Origin: Macrostomum lignano
Lineage: Eukaryota
Length of the DNA: 22,576 nucleotides
Assembly (NCBI GenBank): GCA_002269645.1
Contig: NIVC01002402.1
Location: forward strand, 121,743 to 144,318
Direction: 5' to 3'
Part shown: positions 4,600 to 22,576 of the stretch, piece after piece
How positions within the stretch are numbered: position 1 is the first letter of the stretch
Layout of the letters: each line of letters begins with the position of its first letter
Position numbers and translations under genes: made by a program
The notes under the pieces: model-generated
What the model was told of the DNA's origin: nothing
The model's database searches: none
Seen by the model: the letters and a program-made list of their open reading frames with translations, nothing else

Positions 4600-5032
4600 T
4601 TATCCCAGTCTGTAGTGTAGTGTCTGTAACAGGGAGTTATCCCAGTCTGTAGTGTCTGTAACAGGGAGTTATCCCAGTCTGTAGTGTAGTGTCTGTAACA
4701 GGGAGTTATCCCAGTCTGTAGTGTCTGTAACAGGGAGTTATCCCAGTCTGTAGTGTCTGTAACAGGGAGTTATCCTAGTCTGTAGTGTCTGTAACAGGGA
4801 GTTATCCCAGTCTGTAGTGTCTGTAACAGGGAGTTATCCTAGTCTGTACTGTCTGTAACAGGGAGTTATCCTAGTCTGTAGTGTCTGTAACAGGGAGTTA
4901 TCCTAGTCTGTACTGTCTGTAACAGGGAGTTATCCTAGTCTGTAGTGTCTGTAACAGGGAGTTATCCCAGTCTGTAGTGTCTGTAACAGGGAGTTATCCT
5001 AGTCTGTAGTGTCTGTAACAGGGAGTTATCCC
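4600..5032. repeat. 32-bp minisatellite, about 13 copies
   Basis: Unit TATCCCAGTCTGTAGTGTCTGTAACAGGGAGT with CCC/CCT and GTAG/GTAC variants; two early units carry an extra 5 bp. Confidence 0.95.
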
Positions 5033-8959: not shown

Positions 8960-9425
8960 TAGGCAATGGTCAATTTTAATGAATTGGCAATTGTTATTTG
9001 TCCAGTTAAATTGCTTAACATAAGTATCTTATTTGCTTCATGATGAATATTCTAGATTTTTAAGACTTTTACTTGTATATTGATTAATATTTTCTTGTAT
9101 TCTAGAGTATAAGCAAAGAATTTGGCATAATTTGGTGTATAAGACACACACTACACTAGTATAACAATGAATATAGGCCCCTAATAATCACGATACAAGT
9201 AGGCCTTAAGAAGTCTTTGAAGTCTAGTAATATTTACCCTTGTGGTTTTTATGAACTAGATATTTTAGCATTATCAATTTAACTGGACAAATAACAAAAT
9301 GTCTTTTTGTCCAGTATTAACTGGATGAATAGGAAAGCATGGTCAGCATCCGCCATCCAATAACTGGACAAATAACCACATCGCTATTTGTCTGGTCACC
9401 GGACAAATAACAACTGCCTAATGAA
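8960..9425. mobile_element. Degenerate foldback / MITE-like remnant
   Basis: Perfect 23-bp inverted repeat 8991-9013 / 9275-9297 plus further GGACAAATAA copies at 9366 and 9401 and inverted partial copies near 9307 and 9385; true termini and TSD not found. Confidence 0.5.
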
Positions 9426-10121
9426 TTTGCATTACTACAGTAAACTAGGCTAGCTAAAGTAAAAATAACTATGCTTTAATCTAAGTCTAATACCTAAGAC
9501 AAAAAGAAAATTTGACAGATTGACGATGTGTGGCTACGACTAGGCCCTATGTCCTAGCCTATAGTCATAGCATAGCATAAGCCATAAGCCTATATTCCTA
9601 TAAGGCATAATAAAGCTGGGCCTAAAACTAAAACTAAAAGTAGAAGATTGGGATAAAACAGTATACTATAGCCTCAGTGTAGCATGCATGCCATTGCATG
9701 GTAGGGCGATTTTGACTGCTCTGATATCAAGTTTTCATAATTCAATCTAACTCAAACTCCACTTTACTGCTACGACCCTCGTGTCGCGGATGATGGACTT
9801 CCTATAATGCAGATACACTACACTGTACATACTGTGGTAGTCGCCCTACCACTATGAATCGATTGAATTTAATTTTAATAATAATGTGGCAGGCGAGTTG
9901 CCACGAAGTAATTAATTTGCGAATTTTTCAATTTTGAATTTTTGCATGCTAGAGTTGAAATTTTGCGTTTTTCCGTTACTTGGAGTGATGTCACTCCCGA
10001 CGTTGAATTTGCACGTTTCCCTCATTATGCATTTGCTTACCCGACGCTGGACGAGAGCCGTAGTTTTTGTTTTTTTCCATGTGTTTAATGCCGCCCCGCT
10101 ATATGCCCCTTTGCTTCCATG

Positions 10122-10156
10122 CAAGGACTTCTAGACTTCTAGTCTAGAAGTCCTTG
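10122..10156. mobile_element. 35-bp hairpin insertion with 8-bp TSD (candidate micro-hAT element 1)
   Basis: CAAGGACTTCTAGACT-TCT-AGTCTAGAAGTCCTTG (16-bp perfect arms) flanked by CTTCCATG at 10114-10121 and 10157-10164. Confidence 0.8.
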
Positions 10157-11218
10157 CTTCCATGTTTATGTCCAGCCGATGCTCCAATTTGGGAACCGTT
10201 ATTCCTTTTGTATATTTAAACGCGATGCAACATGATTTTCTGCAACCGCTGGCTTACCCTTCCTCTCCCCCGTCTCATCCTCGATCATAGTGTCGAGTCG
10301 ATTAAGTAATTTTCAATTTATCCAGCCTGCTAAATAATAACGCAACTCAATAAACTTGAACTTCCTAAATAATTATCCGTTGAACCAAAAGCCATAGTAT
10401 TTCTTGAGTCATTTGCCCGTGGGGCGTAAAATAACCAAGTTCTCAGCTCAAAGAAAGCTCCGAGACTGAATCGTTCCGTAATACGTAAATTACGGTGGTG
10501 GCAGCACTACCCGAAAGTAACTGAAAGTAACCAGCTCAGCAAATCTACACATTAAGCTACGGTGTCAGAATCTCCGGTGTTTCATCAATTGAACGGCCGC
10601 GCCGCTACAAGACCGCTCTGCTACGATTACGACTACCCTCCCCCCGGACTTGAGAACCCGGCTGTCGGAGTAAAACAGGAGAAAGATTTCGTTGTGATTC
10701 TTCTGCGCGATTTCCGGCTTTATTCTTGCGAACGCAACGCCGATCGATTTTCGAAGAAAAACTCCAATTCAAAGCCCCAGTTCATTCAATTTTCTTTCTC
10801 CGCCCCCACCTCAATATTAACACTTTATGGACTCTAAATTTACGCTCTCCCCAATTTCTGGTCCCACCTGTCCACCCCGTGGCGCAAATAATGACGTATT
10901 TTTCTGCATGCCCTTTTTCTGTTTTTTATCGTCCCATTTTCTGGTCTTGTATGCCCCTTTTATGGTTATTTTGTTTTTCCCCGTGCGTTTCTGCGGAGTT
11001 TTTCCTTTACCATGTTCTGGACCCTGGTGTCCTCTGATCGCCCCTTCCCATTTTCTGGGCTACTTTGACCACTTTTTGCGCCTTGTTTGGGTATTAACCC
11101 CCGCCCTCTTGCGCCTGTCTCCCCCCCCATGCCTCTCCCGTTTTCCCTTTCCCGTTTCTCCTTCCTTGCTGATATGCAGTCGTTGGTCCGCCCGAAAAGA
11201 AAACAGAAGTGAGTCGAG

Positions 11219-11792
11219 TCAGTTTCCAACGACATTGTTGCGCTTGAGGTGGACGAGGACCGCGCTGAACGAGCGCTCCGGGCGGCTGACGCAGAAGGGA
11301 GGCACAGATTGTCCGCACGCAGCAACCCCCAGAAACCGACCAGCAGGCAGCACCAGAAGGCCGCGCCGCGTCAGGATGTTGTGTCGATTTGGGATCTGAG
11401 ATGCTGCAGCATGGCGGGGGTAAAGCCGACTTTCTGTCTTGCATGGGCGCCCCGTTGCCGTTTGACACCTTGAAGGGCGAGGCGCACTACTAGAGGATGG
11501 ACAGTCGGGTCGGCCCCCCCCCCAGCCAGCTTGTAGAGCCACGAAACCGCGTGCAGGTAGGTGGAGAAGCTGGCGAATGCGGCCAGGTGCTTGAGGTGTA
11601 GGTGAGAGACGTAGAGTGACACCGTCGGTCCGTCGGCCTCTAGAGGTTGCACGCTGATGTCGCTGCAGAAGCGCTCCCAACAGCTCAGCTGGGACCTGAG
11701 CTGGGCTCGTCTCGTATTCGGTGCACGTGCCAGGGCTTGGTTGAGCAGCCGGTCTCGTTCCGTCCTCAGGGGCTCCGCTGCAGCTGCTGAAC
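11219..11792 (-). pseudogene. Tyrosine recombinase (YR), N-terminal SAM-like domain and first catalytic Arg; C-terminal H-x-x-R/Y part missing
   Basis: Single frame reads LLNQALARAPNTRR...CWERFCSDISVQP...SFSTYLHAVSWLYKLAG...DPTVHPLVVRLALQGVKR...; in-frame TGA 11373-11371; then LLVGFWGLLRADNLC; homology fades near 11200. Confidence 0.85.
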
Positions 11793-11911
11793 CTGTGAGA
11801 GGAGAGATTGACAGGAAGCAGCAGACAGGGCGTGCGATGCGATAGCAGATGGGTCAATGTAGATAGTGCCATAGTAGCGAAATAAGAAATTAACTAGGCC
11901 ATGCTTATGAT

Positions 11912-13390
11912 TCAGGCGAGAAGCTGGCCGTCACTAAAAATTTGAAACCGGCCAGGGACATGAAACACCTCGGAGTAAATGCGGTGCTTCAGCGCGAGTA
12001 AAATAGCCGTGCGCATCATGGCGCTTGAACCACAGGGGGCTTGGCAGAGCCCTCGCGCAGCATCCCAGCCACAGACGAGTTGTCGGTGTAAAAAACGATG
12101 TGGAAGTTAGCTAGGTGCTCTTTAAAAAGGATAATAAAAAGCAGAGGCATCACACACTCCAGGTAGTTGATGTGCAGTCCATGAAGGGCACCACTAAAGT
12201 CAGCCAACCAGTTGGCATACATCCAGTCGGTCCTATACTTCCGTCAGAAATGACAGCAGCGCCACCTGATAGGCAAGCGTCCGTCTCAACCACCAGCCGG
12301 TTCGTGAAGGCCGGCCACAGTTCGATTCCATGCATCCAGTTCGTCGCTGATCGCCAGAAAGGCAGTTGCTCACCAAGTTGACCTTTGATGCGCATCTTGT
12401 GGTGAGGCAAGTCCAAGCTGTTGGTCAGGTTGATGAGGCCAAAGTAACGATCTACCAGCGCGGGCGACCTCGCAGAACCAACCGATTTTACCACAGAGCT
12501 TCTGCAGTTGCTTTTTGCTGAGTCGCTTGCAAGAGAGTCAGGCGGCCTTCAGCCGTATCAATGTGGATGCCGAGAAAAACCATGGATTTGCTGGGTGGAG
12601 ATAGCTTCTCCCTGTTGATTGAAAAACCCAGGCGGCGCAGCAGACTCAGAAGAGTGCTATAGGCTTCCTGGCAGGCTTCCAGCGTGCTCGCGGCAACGGC
12701 AAAGTCATCGAGGTAGTTGCAGATGACGTGGTACCCTCGCCGAACCATCATACGCTTAACGCTTAACGCTTCCGACAAGCGGTGGAAAATGTCGACGCTA
12801 GCGGCAAACCCGAAGCCGAGGCAGGTGTTAACTAGGTACCTGGGCTCACTCTCGCCGCTGAAGGTCCACCGGAGTCCTGTGATGGAGTAGGCTGTAGAGC
12901 TGACGGGGCAGGAGCGGTAGGATTTGGTCAGATCGATTTTAGTCATAAACCAGCCCGGCTTCAGCTTCTTGGTAAACGCGTTGACAGTCGAAAAGCGAAG
13001 CTTCTTGTCCTGCTTAAAGTACTCATTGATGCTCCGGCCGCGAGGCAGACTGGCGTCGTGGATCAGCCGGAGACCTCCAGAGGACTTGGCCACCGCTCAC
13101 AGGGGGCTGACGATGTGCGGTTTATCCTTCACTAGCATGTATCTGTTGTTCTTCACTTCCTCCAGGATCAGTTTCTCAACTTGCTCACGATTCTCAGGAC
13201 AAGTGGCGGATCTGTGGTTTTCTTCGCTAGCTGCGAGACTGTTGCTCTGGTTGGTGATTTCGAAATCTCTTCTGATGCCGTTCAAGATGGACTCGGCGCC
13301 TGGATCCGACGATTGTGCAGCCCGGAGCAGGAAAGCGCAGCGCGGCTTCGGACATGGCTTGAGGGTTTAAAAGACTAAAAGTTTGAGGCT
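11912..13390 (-). pseudogene. pol: reverse transcriptase and RNase H
   Basis: ILNGIRRDFEI...PHIVSPL*AVAKSSGGLRLIHDAS...KIDLTKSYR...LGFGFAAS...NYLDD (YLDD 12715-12704)...FLGIHIDT; RNase H pieces VVETDAC, HINYLE, FYTDNSSV, FHVPG across shifted frames; stop 11914-11912. Confidence 0.92.
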
Positions 13391-13394
13391 GGAC

Positions 13395-13430
13395 CAGGGA
13401 CAACTTAAGTTGTAGTTTTAGTTGTCCCTG
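13395..13430. mobile_element. 36-bp insertion with 11-bp TIRs and 8-bp TSD (candidate micro-hAT element 2), nested in the retrotransposon
   Basis: CAGGGACAACT-TAAGTTGTAGTTTT-AGTTGTCCCTG flanked by GGCTGGAC at 13387-13394 and 13431-13438. Confidence 0.85.
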
Positions 13431-13490
13431 GGCTGGACCCAGCTCGCTGACATCGATGACATCGAGGAGCTCGATGGCTGGCCCCCGTAC

Positions 13491-13700
13491 TCAGTTTTTT
13501 GTAGCTTGTGCACCCGACTCATGCGCACAGGCCGGGTGGTTGCTTTGCAGACTCGGCAGATATGTTGGAAATGGCAGGCCTTGCTCAAGCTTTTGTCGGC
13601 GTTGAAATTGTTGCAGATGGATCGATTCGCTGGATATTGCGAAGTCTTGGACTTCAACAGTCTTGGAGCGGCAGCAGCGCCCTCTCGCGCTGAGCTGAGC
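13491..13700 (-). pseudogene. gag C-terminal zinc-finger remnant
   Basis: ICNNFNADKSLSKACHFQHICRVC then, after a frameshift, NHPACAHE...TKN*: CCCH-like plus CCHC-like knuckles typical of YR-retroelement gag; N-terminal part absent. Confidence 0.7.
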
Positions 13701-14197
13701 AACGTATATATAAAACACATGCACACCGGGGATTAGGGGTGTTGAGTCAGAGCACGTACGTACAGCGCGTATAAAACAAGCACGAGTACAAGGTCGGGGC
13801 GATAAAAAAGAGGGGCAGCGAGGCAGGTCACTCAGCCATTAAAAACGGCTAAAGCCCACTTGCTTTACCCGCCCATTATTCGAATATTCAAAATTGATCA
13901 CAATACTTTTTGATATTATTGACTATATTATCCTACTTCCTACTAAGAGTAGATGAAATAGCGCGTGCGTAGAACAGTTTCTAAAAATGTACGATCGCTT
14001 TATACAAATTCTTTCGTTGGAGAACTGCTGCCGCTTGTTGACCAATTGACAGTGGGCTGCGATATGATTGGCTGAAAATTCCTGCATGTCATTCGAGTTC
14101 GCTTTAAATGCAAGTGAGAATAGATTAACAAGGCCGCTGAAAATCCCAAACAAAAGGCAAAAAACTAAAAGAACAGCAAAAGCGTTGGCTTAGTAAA

Positions 14198-14560: not shown

Positions 14561-16188
<1,628 letters not shown>

Positions 16189-16627: not shown

Positions 16628-17120
16628 GATAGAGTGATACTGAGACAGACAGAGTGAAATTAAGACAGAGTGAAATTGGGACAGAGTGAGTTTAAGACCG
16701 AGTGAAATCAAGATAGACAGAGTGAGATTAAGACAGAGTGAAATTGGGACAGAGTGAGTTTAAGACCGAGTGAAATCAAGATAGACAGAGTGAGATTAAG
16801 ACAGAGTGAAATGTGGACAGAGTGAGTTTAAGACAGAGTGAAATTGAGACAGAGTGAGGTTAAGACAGAGTGAGATTGGGACAGAGTGAGGTTAAGACAG
16901 AGTGAGATTGGGACAGAGTGAGGTTAAGACAGAGTGAGATTGGGACAGAGTGAGGTTAAGACAGAGTGAGATTGGGACAGAGTGAGGTTAAGACAGAGTG
17001 AGATTGGGACAGAGTGAGGTTAAGACAGAGTGAGATTGGGACAGAGTGAGGTTAAGACAGAGTGAAATTGGGACAGAGTGAGGTTAAGACAGAGTGAAAT
17101 CAAGATAGCCAGAGTGAAAT
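16628..17120. repeat. 16-bp minisatellite with 32-bp dimer structure
   Basis: Alternating GACAGAGTGAGATTGG and GACAGAGTGAGGTTAA units; more diverged at the left end. Confidence 0.93.
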
Positions 17121-17636
17121 TCAGAGCAAGTGCACTTTATTCACGAAAGGCACTGAAGCCTCATTAAAGAGCGCTACTAAATGTCCGCAGACAATTAAAC
17201 TCCCAAAGTCGACACAATGCAACGGTTCAATATAAATGAGGTTGTAAATAAAAAAATGATGTTAATGATGATGTTTGCAAGCAAAACGAGCGGCCTCCTA
17301 TGCGGTTTTTGTGGCTGGCTGTTTTTAACGACCTTTTTTGAGGCTCATTACTCGAGGATATATAGATAAGATAGACATACTACAAAGGCTGCTCAGAGTA
17401 AAAAGAAGCAGCCTCTTAAACTAGAAAAAGTGATGAGTAAAAAAATGATCTTATTTACTAAGCAAGCAAGCTCTCGGCGCGTAAGGTTTTCTCAATTGGA
17501 GCAGTCATCCGAACTGTTTGTACAGCACCGCCTACCCATAGTCTGCCTTGGTCTGAGTACCATTGAATATTTTCAAGCCATCGTTGCTGCGTGATTGCTC
17601 AACTTTGCATTCTCATCCATTCGAGATTCAGTTTTG

Positions 17637-18965
17637 GCGCCATTTAAGCATCAGTTTAAGCGCCATTTAAGCATCAGTTTAAGCGCCATTCAAGCATCAG
17701 TTTAAGCGCCATTTAAGCATCAGTTTAAGCGCCATTTAAGCATCAGTTTAAGCGCCATTTAAGCATCAGTTTAAGCGCCGTTCAAGCATCAGTTTAAGCG
17801 CCATTTAAGCATCAGTTTGAGCGCCATTCAAGCATCAGTTTAAGCGCCATTCAAGCATCAGTTTAAGCGCCATTTAAGAATCAGTTTAAGCGCCATTTAA
17901 GCATCAGTTTAAGCGCCAATTAGGCATCAGTTTAAGCGCCAATTAGGCATCAGTTTAAGCGCCAATTAGGCATCAGTTTAAGCGCCAATTAGGCATCAGT
18001 TTAAGCGCCATTCAAGCATCAGTTTAAGCGCCAATTAGACATCAGTTTAAGCGCCATTTAAGAATCAGTTTAAGCGCCATATTTAAGCATCAGTTTAAGC
18101 GCCATATTTAAGCATCAGTTTAAGCGCCATATTTAAGCATCAGTTTAAGCGCCATATTTAAGCATCAGTTTAAGCGCCATTTAAGAATCAGTTTAAGCGC
18201 CATTTAAGAATCAGTTTAAGCGCCATTTAAGAATCAGTTTAAGCGCCATTTAAGCATCAGTTTAAGCGCCATTTAAGCATCAGTTTAAGCGCCATTTAAG
18301 CATCAGTTTAAGCGCCGTTCAAGCATCAGTTTAAGCGCCATTTAAGCATCAGTTTAAGCGCCATTTAAGCATCAGTTTAAGCGCCGTTCAAGCATCAGTT
18401 TAAGCGCCAATTAGGCATCAGTTTAAGCGCCATATTCAAGCATCAGTTTAAGCGCCATTTAAGAATCAGTTTAAGCGCCATATTTAAGCATCAGTTTAAG
18501 CGCCATTTAAGAATCAGTTTAAGCGCCATTTAAGAATCAGTTTAAGCGCCATTTAAGCATCAGTTTAAGCGCCATTTAAGAATCAGTTTAAGCGCCATTT
18601 AAGCATCAGTTTAAGCGCCATTTAAGCATCAGCTTAAGCGCCATTTAAGCATCAGTTTATGCGCCATTTAAGCATCAGTTTGAGCGCCATTCAAGCATCA
18701 GTTTAAGCGCCATTCAAGCATCAGTTTAAGCGCCATTTAAGAATCAGTTTAAGCGCCATTTAAGCATCAGTTTAAGCGCCAATTAGGCATCAGTTTAAGC
18801 GCCAATTAGGCATCAGTTTAAGCGCCGTTTAAGCATCAGTTTAAGCGCCATTCAAGCATCAGTTTAAGCGCCATTTAAGCATCAGTTTAAGCGCCGTTTA
18901 AGCATCAGTTTAAGCGCCGTTTAAGCATCAGTTTAAGCGCCATTCAAGCATCAGTTTAAGCGCCA
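17637..18965. repeat. 23-bp minisatellite, about 57 copies
   Basis: Unit GCGCCATTTAAGCATCAGTTTAA with ATTCA, GTTCA, AATTAGG, GAATC and +AT (25-bp) variants. Confidence 0.97.
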
Positions 18966-19541
18966 CTTGAGCATAAAATAAACTAAGACTTTATAAAAGC
19001 TCATTCAAAAGTAAAATCGTGCACTTGCTATAGCCAGCTTGGAATCAAAATCAAGCAAGGGTCTGTTTCCAAATGGAACTCACTCTCGTGGGAACCGTTC
19101 CAGTTGTCAATGACTCACTGGAGTTCTTTCTCTCTTCATCTTCATAGTTCATACGAGCTACAGCCATAGTTGATTGAAGTGTTTTGTAGCAAAATACCCG
19201 ACCGCGGGGGCCTTGAATATTGAATTAAATTATTCTCAGCTCTTCGACCATCTCAGACTCAATTTTGGCGGCTTTGATATTACTGTTTACTGAACTAGAG
19301 AACTGTTTGGTCATGGCTTTGCTTTTCAATGTTGTAAAGACAAGTTTGACAATCCAGCACGTGTGCAAGTGTGAGTGTGTGTGTATCAGTCTGGAGTAGA
19401 CTGGAAAACACACATTTCCAGACTCAAGTCGCTTTGTTTGAGTATATATATATATATCCATAACAGTTAGAGGCCTGGTGGGTGGTTGTGAAGCACTTCA
19501 GTCTGTGAGGTCCTCATCTTATTACCTTTGGCTGCAGTGCG

Positions 19542-22500
19542 TCTGACACAGCTAGCTATCATTTCTGACACAGCTAGCTATCATCTCTGACACAATCTAG
19601 CTACAATATCTGACACAATCTAGCTACAATATCTGACACAATCTAGCTACAATATCTGACACAATCTAGCTACAATATCTGACACAATCTAGCTACAATA
19701 TCTGACACAATCTAGCTACAATATCTGACACAATCTAGCTACAATATCTGACACAATCTAGCTAGCCATCTCTGACACAATCTAGCTACAATATCTGACA
19801 CAATCTAGCTACAATATCTGACACAATCTAGCTACAATATCTGACACAATCTAGCTACAATATCTGACACAATCTAGCTAGCCATCTCTGACACAATCTA
19901 GCTACAATATCTGACACAATCTAGCTAGCCATCTCTGACACAATCTAGCTACAATATCTGACACAATCTAGCTAACATCACTGACACAATCTAGCTACAA
20001 TCTGACACAATCAAGCTATCATCTCTGACACAATCTAGCTACAATATCTGACACAATCTAGCTACAATATCTGACACAATCTAGCTACAATATCTGACAC
20101 AATCTAGCTAGCCATCTCTGACACAATCTAGCTACAATATCTGACACAATCTAGCTACAATATCTGACACAATCTAGCTACAATATCTGACACAATCTAG
20201 CTACAATATCTGACACAATCTAGCTAGCCATCTCTGACACAATCTAGCTACCATCTCTGACACAATCTAGCTACAATACAATATCTGACACAATCTAGCT
20301 ACAATCTCTGACACAATATAGCTACAATCTCTGACACAATCTAGCTACAATATCTGACACAATCTAGCTACGATATCTGACACAATCTAGCTACAATCTC
20401 TGACACAATCTAGCTACAATACAATATCTGACACAATCTAGCTACAATCTCTGACACAATCTAGCTAGAATATCTGACACAATCTAGCTACAATATTTGA
20501 AACAATCTAGCTACAATATCTGACACAATGTAGCTACAATATCTGACACAATCTAGCTACAATCTCTGACACAATCTAGCTACAATCTCTGACACAATCT
20601 AGCTACAATCTCTGACACAATCTAGCTACAATACAATATCTGACACAATCTAGCTAGAATATCTGACACAATCTAGCTACAATCTCTGACACAATCTAGC
20701 TACAATCTCTGACACAATGTAGCTACAATATCTGACACAATCTAGCTAGAATGTCTGACACAGTCTAGCTACCATCTCTGACACAATCTAGCTACCATCT
20801 CTGACACAATCTAGCTACCATCTCTGACACAATCTAGCTACAATATCTGACACAATCTAGCTACAATCTCTGACACAATCTAGCTACAATCTCTGACACA
20901 ATCTAGCTACAATCTCTGACACAATCTAGCTACAATCTCTGACACAATCTAGCTACAATCTCTGACACAATCTAGCTACAATCTCTGACACAATCTAGCT
21001 ACAATATCTGACACAATCTAGCTACCATCTCTGACACAATCTAGCTACAATATCTGACACAATCTAGCTACAATCTCTGACACAATCTAGCTACAATATC
21101 TGACACAATCTAGCTACAATATCTGACACAATCTAGCTACAATCTCTGACACAATCTAGCTAGCCATCTCTGACACAATCTAGCTACAATCTCTGACACA
21201 ATCTAGCTACCATCTCTGACACAATGTAGCTACAATATCTGACACAATCTAGCTACAATCTCTGACACAATCTAGCTACAATATCTGACACAATCTAGCT
21301 ACAATCTCTGACACAATCTAGCTACAATACAATATCTGACACAATCTAGCTACAATATCTGACACAATCTAGCTACAATGACTGACACAGTCTAGCTACC
21401 ATCTCTGACACAATCTAGCTACAATGTCTGACACAATCTAGCTACCATCTCTGACACAATCTAGCTACCATCTCTGACACAATCTAGCTACAATATCGGA
21501 CACAATGTAGCTACAATCTCTGACACAATCTAGCTACAATCTCTGACACAATCTAGCTACCATCTCTGACACAATCTAGCTACAATATCTGACACAATCT
21601 AGCTACCATCTCTGACACAATCTAGCTAGAATATCTGACACAATCTAGCTAGAATATCTGACACAATCTAGCTACAATATCTGACACAATCTAGCTAAAA
21701 TCTCTGACACAATCTAGCTACAATCTCTGACACAATCTAGCTACAATCTCTGACACAATCTAGCTACAATACAATATCTGACACAATCTAGCTAGAATAT
21801 CTGACACAATCTAGCTACAATCTCTGACACAATCTAGCTACAATCTCTGACACAATCTAGCTACAATCTCTGACACAATGTAGCTACAATATCTGACACA
21901 ATCTAGCTAGAATGTCTGACACAGTCTAGCTACCATCTCTGACACAATCTAGCTACCATCTCTGACACAATCTAGCTACCATCTCTGACACAATCTAGCT
22001 ACAATATCTGACACAATCTAGCTACAATCTCTGACACAATCTAGCTACAATATCTGACACAATCTAGCTACAATCTCTGACACAATCTAGCTACAATCTC
22101 TGACACAATCTAGCTACCATCTCTGACACAATCTAGCTACAATCTCTGACACAATCTAGCTACCATCTCTGACACAATGTAGCTACAATATCTGACACAA
22201 TCTAGCTACAATCTCTGACACAATCTAGCTACAATCTCTGACACAATCTAGCTACAATCTCTGACACAATCTAGCTACAATACAATATCTGACACAATCT
22301 AGCTACAATATCTGACACAATCTAGCTATCATCTCTGACACAGTCTAGCTACCATCTCTGACACAATCTAGCTACAATGTCTGACACAATCTAGCTACCA
22401 TCTCTGACACAATCTAGCTACCATCTCTGACACAATCTAGCTACAATATCGGACACAATGTAGCTACAATCTCTGACACAATCAGCTACAATCTCTGACA

Positions 22501-22576
22501 CAATCTAGCTACCATCTCTGACACAATCTAGCTACAATATCTGACACAATCTAGCTACCATCTCTGACACAATCTA
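19542..22576. repeat. 23-bp minisatellite, over 3 kb, runs off the window
   Basis: Unit TCTGACACAATCTAGCTACAATA with ACAATC, ACCATC, AGAATA, AGCCATC and +ACAAT variants. Confidence 0.98.

Follow-up and report, generated by a model that had tools for sequence, protein, structure and literature searches.

The analysed window is a 22,576-nt stretch of the Macrostomum lignano contig NIVC01002402.1, in which two tiny inverted-repeat units, each directly bordered by a perfect 8-bp direct repeat, were found where a preliminary description had placed them. At site 1, the left copy of the target-site duplication (TSD; CTTCCATG, 10114-10121) adjoins a 35-bp insert (10122-10156), which is followed by the right copy of CTTCCATG (10157-10164). 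The insert reads CAAGGACTTCTAGACT-TCT-AGTCTAGAAGTCCTTG and can be parsed as 17 nt + C + 17 nt. With arms that are perfect over 16 nt and a centre of 3 nt, it is a near-perfect palindrome, the symmetry of which exceeds the 14-nt ends reported initially. Folded as a DNA hairpin, it reaches -18.8 kcal/mol (z = -9.9).

At site 2, a 36-bp insert (13395-13430, CAGGGACAACTTAAGTTGTAGTTTTAGTTGTCCCTG) is enclosed by two copies of the perfect 8-bp repeat GGCTGGAC (13387-13394 and 13431-13438). It is parsed as CAGGGACAACTTAAGTT / GT / AGTTTTAGTTGTCCCTG, i.e., 17 + 2 + 17 nt. The arms are perfect over 11 nt and match at 14 of 17 positions without gaps, and the centre contains AGTTGT-AGTTTT-AGTTGT repeats as templated filler would give. 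Chance identity between element and flank extends the raw direct repeats to 11 nt (site 1) and 9 nt (site 2); at both sites, only the 8-bp register yields inverted-repeat termini.

Site 2 is located in a degenerate retroelement on the minus strand (11219-13726), which forms the context of the insert and is not part of the scar. Its reverse transcriptase (approximately 12551-13288) contains in-frame stops, was recognized as Pfam RVT_1 (E = 2e-11), and the retroelement is matched by the proteins P0001-P0004 in tblastn. The insert lies between the upstream ORF of the retroelement and the reverse transcriptase, and on the minus strand it provides the TAA stop codon (13418-13420) that terminates the ORF 13418-13726. 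The M. lignano protein P0004 matches on either side of site 2 (13475-13555 and 12953-13096). It is the only close relative; its gene model is chimeric and does not span the site, and it yielded no empty site. Neither terminal repeats of the host retroelement nor paralogous empty sites were found within the window.

The window was also scanned without a predefined sequence pattern for perfect 8-bp repeats directly flanking an insert of 16-120 bp with terminal inverted repeats of at least 7 nt. Sites 1 and 2 were the only matches, compared with a mean of 0.003 and a maximum of 1 in 300 dinucleotide-preserving shuffles. The inserted sequence is not derived from the flanks, and no Rfam match was obtained in the window. 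The relatedness of the two pairs of ends proposed earlier was verified for the common CARGGAC...GTCCYTG and is non-random (P about 3-5e-4), with the identity corrected from 11/14 to 10/14 positions. Two related transposon families are represented, CAAGGACTTCTAGA... (family 1, site 1) and CAGGGACAACT... (family 2, site 2), and the transposon origin by independent insertion events is supported.

A pattern search in public metagenome contigs revealed two more family-1 members of similar size (contigs L001 and L002, both 37 bp); this search could return only inserts of 28-42 bp, and the total sample comprises four inserts. Both copies have the same 14-nt ends as site 1 in other flanks; one is bordered by an 8-bp and the other by a 7-bp duplication. 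Together with sites 1 and 2, this gives insert lengths of 35, 36, 37, and 37 bp. Each of the four inserts has a flanking duplication of its own, 8 bp long in three cases and 7 bp in one, and can be parsed as 17 + (1-3) + 17 nt. The palindromic arms of family 1 break after 16, 16, and 18 nt in the three copies, around the centres TCT, CTATT, and T. Between the identical 14-nt arms, the copies read CTTCTAG, TGCTATTCA, and TAATTATTA in this small sample, which possibly includes several species. As these three centres differ, they give no evidence that any copy derives from another. In bacterial and archaeal genomes, which served as a negative control, the site 2 arms occur as hairpins of 23-46 bp (n = 11), and a flanking direct repeat is present in 0 of the 11. 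The viral contigs contained one unrelated 45-bp hairpin without a TSD. Queries of full-text papers with the terminal sequences returned unrelated primers only, and the Macrostomum transposon literature that was found concerns LTR elements only.

Both structures are probably immobile donor-site scars of a cut-and-paste DNA transposon of the P-element type, with about 17 nt of each end kept. A full-length element with CARGGAC... inverted-repeat ends would have inserted and generated a TSD of 7-8 bp. In a later excision, the transposase would have made staggered cuts in the manner of the Drosophila P transposase, with one strand broken at the tip of the element and its partner about 17 nt further in, within the inverted repeat, so that each flank would have retained a 3′ tail of roughly 17 nt of element sequence. 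As such tails are identical and not complementary, end joining would have ligated them nearly intact with 1-3 filler bases. The product would be TSD + ~17 nt + filler + ~17 nt + TSD with an insert of 35-37 bp, a scar that is no longer mobile. The earlier suggestion that full elements repeatedly collapse to head-to-head inverted repeats comes close to this, except that the collapse would be the excision event itself. To our knowledge, a 17-nt stagger has been demonstrated biochemically for the Drosophila P element only, which counts against this interpretation.

Cleavage by the P transposase takes place 17 nt within each inverted repeat, and the joining of the ends leaves TSD-(at most 17 nt)-filler-(at most 17 nt)-TSD (PMC2895639); the 17-nt stagger is likewise given in PMC10983969. 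Among 44 sequenced Drosophila P{wa} excision junctions with both TSDs, 28 are 30-37 bp and nine are 35-37 bp long (PMC2895639, Table 1), examples being 17 + 2 + 16 = 35, 17 + 3 + 16 = 36, and 16 + 4 + 17 = 37. The common size of the four inserts, which is 2 × 17 nt plus 1-3 bases, matches these leftovers of P-type staggered excision and end joining (PMC2895639). Like the fly footprints, the units are enclosed by a TSD and hold at most about 17 nt per inverted repeat with the tips facing outward, along with few filler bases, which in the fly range from none to a few and are sometimes templated. Their total lengths of 35, 36, 37, and 37 bp lie within the typical 30-37 bp of the immobile P footprints. 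The TSDs are perfect in three cases of 8 bp and comprise 7 bp in the fourth, which is within the 7-9 bp of the P superfamily, where the length varies within one family (PMC3698922). In contrast to the fly, the terminal sequence is CARGGAC... instead of CATGATG..., the host is a different one, and the common 30- and 32-bp microhomology classes are absent from these four inserts. From this anatomy we infer an excision history with a stagger of roughly 17 nt and an assignment to the P superfamily; the excision itself would be P-like with a long stagger, while the superfamily is unproven.

The termini of P-type elements were compared with those of the families described here. A P-type element in contig L015 encodes an 852-aa transposase with THAP, RNaseH, GTP-binding, and C-terminal domains and has the terminus CAAGGCGTTTA (CAAGGCG...), i.e., a CAAGG tip in common with the family found here, and the other P-type elements end with CGTGGTG, (C)CAATGTT, and CATGATG. 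A hAT-like insertion from another organism (contig L026) has the terminus CAGGGATGAGC (CAGGGAT). Given the termini of these four P-type families and the hAT-like element, a superfamily assignment by terminal bases was rejected as undiagnostic, since the P-type tips vary too much. The tips CAAGG and CAGGG fit the YARNG of hAT elements, and together with the hAT-like end in L026 they count against the P assignment. Ac begins with CAGGGATGAAA. In general, animals contain hAT elements more frequently than P elements, which also counts against the P assignment. The target sites were compared with P and hAT motifs as well, which was uninformative: the 14-bp palindromic P motif ATRGTCCGGACWAT (PMC2577343), a motif known for the fly element only, is matched at 7 of 14 positions by site 2 (TGA-GGCTGGAC-CCA) and at 6 of 14 by site 1. 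Searches for a P-type transposase with a single sequence and with a profile led to 116 and 196 protein matches, of which most are unnamed, the named ones are all from arthropods and none is from Macrostomum; these searches required shared 5-residue words, and their reach may fall short. Parent elements or single ends with these termini, the longer elements that the preliminary description proposed to look for, were not present in the window or in L001 and L002, where only partial matches at chance level occurred, and this counts against the scar interpretation.

The initial assignment to hAT was not supported. Like hAT elements (Ac/Ds, hobo, Hermes), the inserts have tips that fit YARNG (CAAGG and CAGGG), and three of the four TSDs are 8 bp long; these features are also found in P-type elements and are therefore not discriminating. 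Unlike the four inserts, which as scars would retain 16-18 nt of each end, hAT scars are altered TSDs that carry no element sequence: hAT, Transib, and MULE transposases free the whole element end via a hairpin formed in the flanking DNA, which leaves nothing of the element at the donor site (PMC5499845). That the inserts are instead ultra-short (35-37 bp) non-autonomous hAT MITEs, each moved as a unit by a hAT transposase that acts in trans, is improbable, even though four inserts of similar size with distinct TSDs and YARNG tips, and the CAGGGAT end of the hAT-like element elsewhere, would suit such a family. The outer 14 nt of the family-1 copies are identical, but the three centres are unrelated and no two copies look master-derived; in this small sample, possibly from several species, many near-identical copies as in MITEs were not seen. 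Two families would each have had to shrink independently to equal length, and one copy has a 7-bp TSD. The mobility of hAT non-autonomous elements needs subterminal transposase-binding repeats, for which the 1-5 nt between the inverted arms leave no room, and a stiff 35-bp duplex would not be expected to join its ends in one transposase complex, judged from DNA mechanics. The constant size of 2 × 17 nt plus 1-3 bases, the three centres and the missing space for subterminal sites thus argue against the previously considered mobility as 35-36-bp units. MITEs are usually tens to hundreds of bp long and share terminal inverted repeats and flanking TSDs with the non-coding units found here, but they occur as near-identical copies, whereas these units have only the outer arms in common. 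The same likeness applies to BuT5, a P-associated MITE, which in contrast to the 35-37 bp found here is about 1 kb long and keeps THAP-binding sites (PMC3698922).

Three further explanations were weighed against P-type scars. Excision of an element of any superfamily, hAT included, could have been followed by abortive gap repair, in which only the first few nt of each end are recopied from the sister chromatid and then joined. In wild-type flies, P excision is most often followed by incomplete synthesis-dependent repair and then end joining (PMC2895639), and the short centre repeats (GACTTCTA twice; AGTTGT...AGTTGT) resemble templated filler. Such repair would be expected to leave broad, asymmetric lengths, but in all four inserts some 17-18 nt are left on each side, with symmetric arms (16/16, 16/16, and 18/18), which makes this route quite unlikely. 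A non-P transposase, either hAT-like or from an uncharacterised superfamily with 8-bp TSDs, that cuts about 17 nt inside the ends would leave an identical anatomy; the YARNG tips would fit it, and no P transposase has been linked to the host. It is nonetheless an unlikely source, as every hAT, MULE, and Transib enzyme characterised so far works through hairpins in the flank (PMC5499845). An origin without any transposon, through chance hairpins, local inverted duplications or an assembly artefact, has a precedent in a 36-bp scan match in L015 (7-nt arms, 8-bp repeat), which was rejected because a 19-bp inverted duplication of local origin accounted for it; false positives of this kind therefore exist in the scan. 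Here, the two matches against 0.003 in shuffles, arms of 11-18 nt instead of 7 nt, the insert sequence foreign to the flanks and the recurrence of the 28 terminal bases in two unrelated contigs, where they are likewise bordered by duplications, effectively refute such an origin. We know of no enzyme outside the P superfamily that cuts about 17 nt inside the element ends. It is possible, though rather doubtful, that the CARGGAC elements either belong to a hAT-like or other superfamily with 8-bp TSDs and an excision stagger of about 17 nt, or that the 35-37-bp palindromes are mobile as units. The former would represent a new cleavage mode, and the latter would be the smallest eukaryotic transposable elements known.

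If the interpretation as P-type excision scars is true, the scars record the geometry of the cuts made in a transposon family that is uncharacterised, and the 17-nt staggered cut would be suggested to operate in lophotrochozoan animals too. Scars of 30-40 bp escape standard repeat annotation but can break reading frames, and site 2 adds a stop codon. As they could be taken for a novel "micro-MITE" class, recognising the signature of a TSD with 2 × ~17 nt is useful to curators. Two scars in 22 kb hint at much past excision in this genome, and scar counts may offer one of the few direct ways to quantify excision rather than insertion in genome history.

The whole window was scanned, free of any motif, for perfect 8-bp direct repeats abutting an insert of 16-120 bp with inverted-repeat ends of at least 7 nt. 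The sole matches were the two inserts of 35 and 36 bp already reported in the preliminary description, which confirms that observation; 300 dinucleotide-preserving shuffles gave a mean of 0.003 matches per shuffle, and looser criteria added nothing but AT-rich low-complexity noise. At site 1 (10114-10164), the target-site duplication (TSD) CTTCCATG (10114-10121 and 10157-10164) directly adjoins both sides of a near-perfect palindrome of 35 bp (10122-10156; CAAGGACTTCTAGACT-TCT-AGTCTAGAAGTCCTTG). At site 2 (13387-13438), an insert of 36 bp (13395-13430; CAGGGACAACTTAAGTTGTAGTTTTAGTTGTCCCTG) lies between the two copies of the TSD GGCTGGAC (13387-13394 and 13431-13438); the ends of this insert are complementary over 11 nt and, when ungapped, at 14 of 17 positions. 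Both inserts end in CARGGAC. They are assigned to two families, whose ends are related as previously proposed (P about 3-5e-4), although the identity was recounted as 10/14 instead of 11/14.

The window is eukaryotic and repeat-rich, with one (GATA)n array and several minisatellites. The (GATA)n microsatellite (14561-16188, about 409 copies, 97% purity) is responsible for an extreme GC skew and for long ORFs that are spurious. Two large 23-bp minisatellite arrays with unlike units are located at 17628-18974 (about 58 copies) and 19542-22576 (about 131 copies, continuing past the window end), and more arrays, built of 31/32-bp and 16/32-bp units, at 1-311, 1672-2361, 4616-5032 and 16647-17105. 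The search of the window against Rfam gave no match. Site 2 is hosted by a decayed reverse-transcriptase (RT) retroelement on the minus strand (11219-13726; Pfam RVT_1) with in-frame stops and frameshifts, one such stop lying within the RT alignment (12551-13288). Judging by its sequence (RLIHDAS motif), we take this RT to resemble DIRS-type elements most. Its only close database relative is one Macrostomum lignano protein (76% identity over the RT piece), a chimeric gene model annotated as POP4-domain protein, which aligns to the left and to the right of site 2. This one short match points to a Macrostomum-like animal as the probable source of the window. The TAA that ends the minus-strand ORF 13418-13726 comes from the insert. 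Neither a full-length element nor a lone end with CARGGAC-family termini was found in the window. Clustered direct and inverted copies of TTATTTGTCCAG(TTA) at 8986-9418, among them a perfect inverted pair of 23 nt with a spacing of 261 nt, are unrelated to the CARGGAC ends and look like the subterminal repeat region of another transposon or a foldback element.

Public metagenome contigs were scanned for the family-1 arms, CAAGGACTTCTAGA-N0-14-TCTAGAAGTCCTTG, and two contigs were obtained that have no other sequence in common with the window. L002, which is animal DNA because it carries a Kunitz-domain exon, contains a 37-bp insert with 18-nt arms (CAAGGACTTCTAGATAAT-T-ATTATCTAGAAGTCCTTG) between perfect 8-bp repeats GTGAATAC. 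The 37-bp insert of L001 has 16-nt arms (CAAGGACTTCTAGATG-CTATT-CATCTAGAAGTCCTTG) and 7-bp repeats GCCTGTG on either side. The same contig holds inverted repeats of roughly 34 nt, about 170 bp apart and rich in CAAGAWTCTTG palindromes (2127-2362), which may be a small MITE. As a control, bacterial and archaeal genomes yielded 11 occurrences of the site-2 arms, all of them 23-46-bp hairpins and none with a flanking direct repeat; the single match in viral contigs is likewise a plain hairpin. Flanking duplications are therefore confined to the animal instances.

The four inserts (35, 36, 37 and 37 bp) lie between four different duplications of 8, 8, 8 and 7 bp. In the family-1 copies, the two sides mirror each other over the outer 16, 16 and 18 nt, after which the symmetry is lost. 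Positions 15-18 vary between copies but are complementary inside each copy, and each insert therefore carries both ends of the particular element from which it derives. The centres are unrelated (TCT, CTATT and T in family 1; GT at site 2 in a 17+17 parse), and a parse of 17 nt + 1-3 nt + 17 nt fits all four inserts. The centres are bordered by short direct repeats (GACTTCTA twice; AGTTGT...AGTTGT) that resemble templated filler.

This anatomy matches that of Drosophila P excision junctions. Cleavage by the P transposase is staggered: the 3′ strand is cut at the tip of the element but the 5′ strand 17 nt into the inverted repeat, and the donor flanks thus keep non-complementary 3′ tails consisting of 17 nt of the element (PMC10983969, PMC2895639). 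Sequenced end-joining junctions read tsd-CATGATGAAATAACAT(A)-filler-(T)ATGTTATTTCATCATG-tsd, e.g., 17+2+16 = 35, 17+3+16 = 36 and 16+4+17 = 37; among those keeping both duplications, 28/44 measure 30-37 bp and 9/44 measure 35-37 bp (PMC2895639, Table 1). The best-supported reading, held with moderate confidence, is that the inserts are immobile excision footprints, left by two related CARGGAC-ended transposon families whose excision would involve a stagger of the P type, about 17 nt long. The same size in two families and at least two sources would arise because length is set by the mechanism.

The remaining probability is shared by three alternatives. True mobile units of the 35-bp class, advanced earlier as a 'micro-hAT family', found no support: the centres differ though the outer arms are identical, so that descent from a 35-bp master does not explain the common size. 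Moreover, a 35-bp duplex is too short for subterminal binding sites and presumably cannot loop, which would leave its ends unpaired in one transposase complex. From extreme deletions by abortive gap repair, broad and asymmetric lengths are expected. Finally, an enzyme other than P could have made the same scars; hAT, Transib and MULE transposases release the element via a flanking-DNA hairpin, and none of its sequence stays behind (PMC5499845).

The excision signature is P-like, and the 7- and 8-bp duplications fall within the 7-9 bp of the P superfamily (PMC3698922). For comparison of termini, contigs encoding P-type transposases were retrieved. A complete element of about 3.4 kb (L015 1433-4863; also L016-L018) has imperfect terminal inverted repeats (TIRs) of about 35 nt starting CAAGGCGTTTA and an intron-less 852-aa transposase with THAP, RNaseH, GTP-binding and C-terminal domains. 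The Logan contigs break exactly at its ends, indicating a multi-copy family, which is probably young. Other P-type elements have termini CGTGGTG... (8-bp duplications verified) or (C)CAATGTT.... Inside a P-type element lies a 1.4-kb hAT-like insertion (L026 8119-9543; TIR CAGGGATGAGCAACC, terminus CAGGGATGAGC, 8-bp TSD TATTAGAT) with a FAM200/GTF2IRD2-like ORF, for which the paralogue L027 shows a clean empty site at about 8095. CAAGG/CAGGG tips therefore fit both superfamilies and do not decide between P and hAT. In large protein searches for P transposases, those matches that carried a name were all from arthropods, and no match from Macrostomum appeared. An apparent TSD with 36-bp insert at L015 4631-4682 was rejected as a 19-bp inverted duplication relative to the sister copies L016/L017; it usefully illustrates how a scan for footprints can yield false positives.

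The terminal bases of the 8-bp TSDs at site 1, site 2 and L002 3130-3182 are complementary (C..G, G..C and G..C), so each palindrome reaches 1 nt into the flanks (chance probability about 1/64, n = 3). A preference for palindromic targets may lie behind this; in the fly P motif, too, position 1 is G and position 8 is C. As superfamily evidence, target-site motifs were uninformative. Excision footprints of this kind are well known in flies; the novelty is modest and lies in the transposon family and the probable host lineage.
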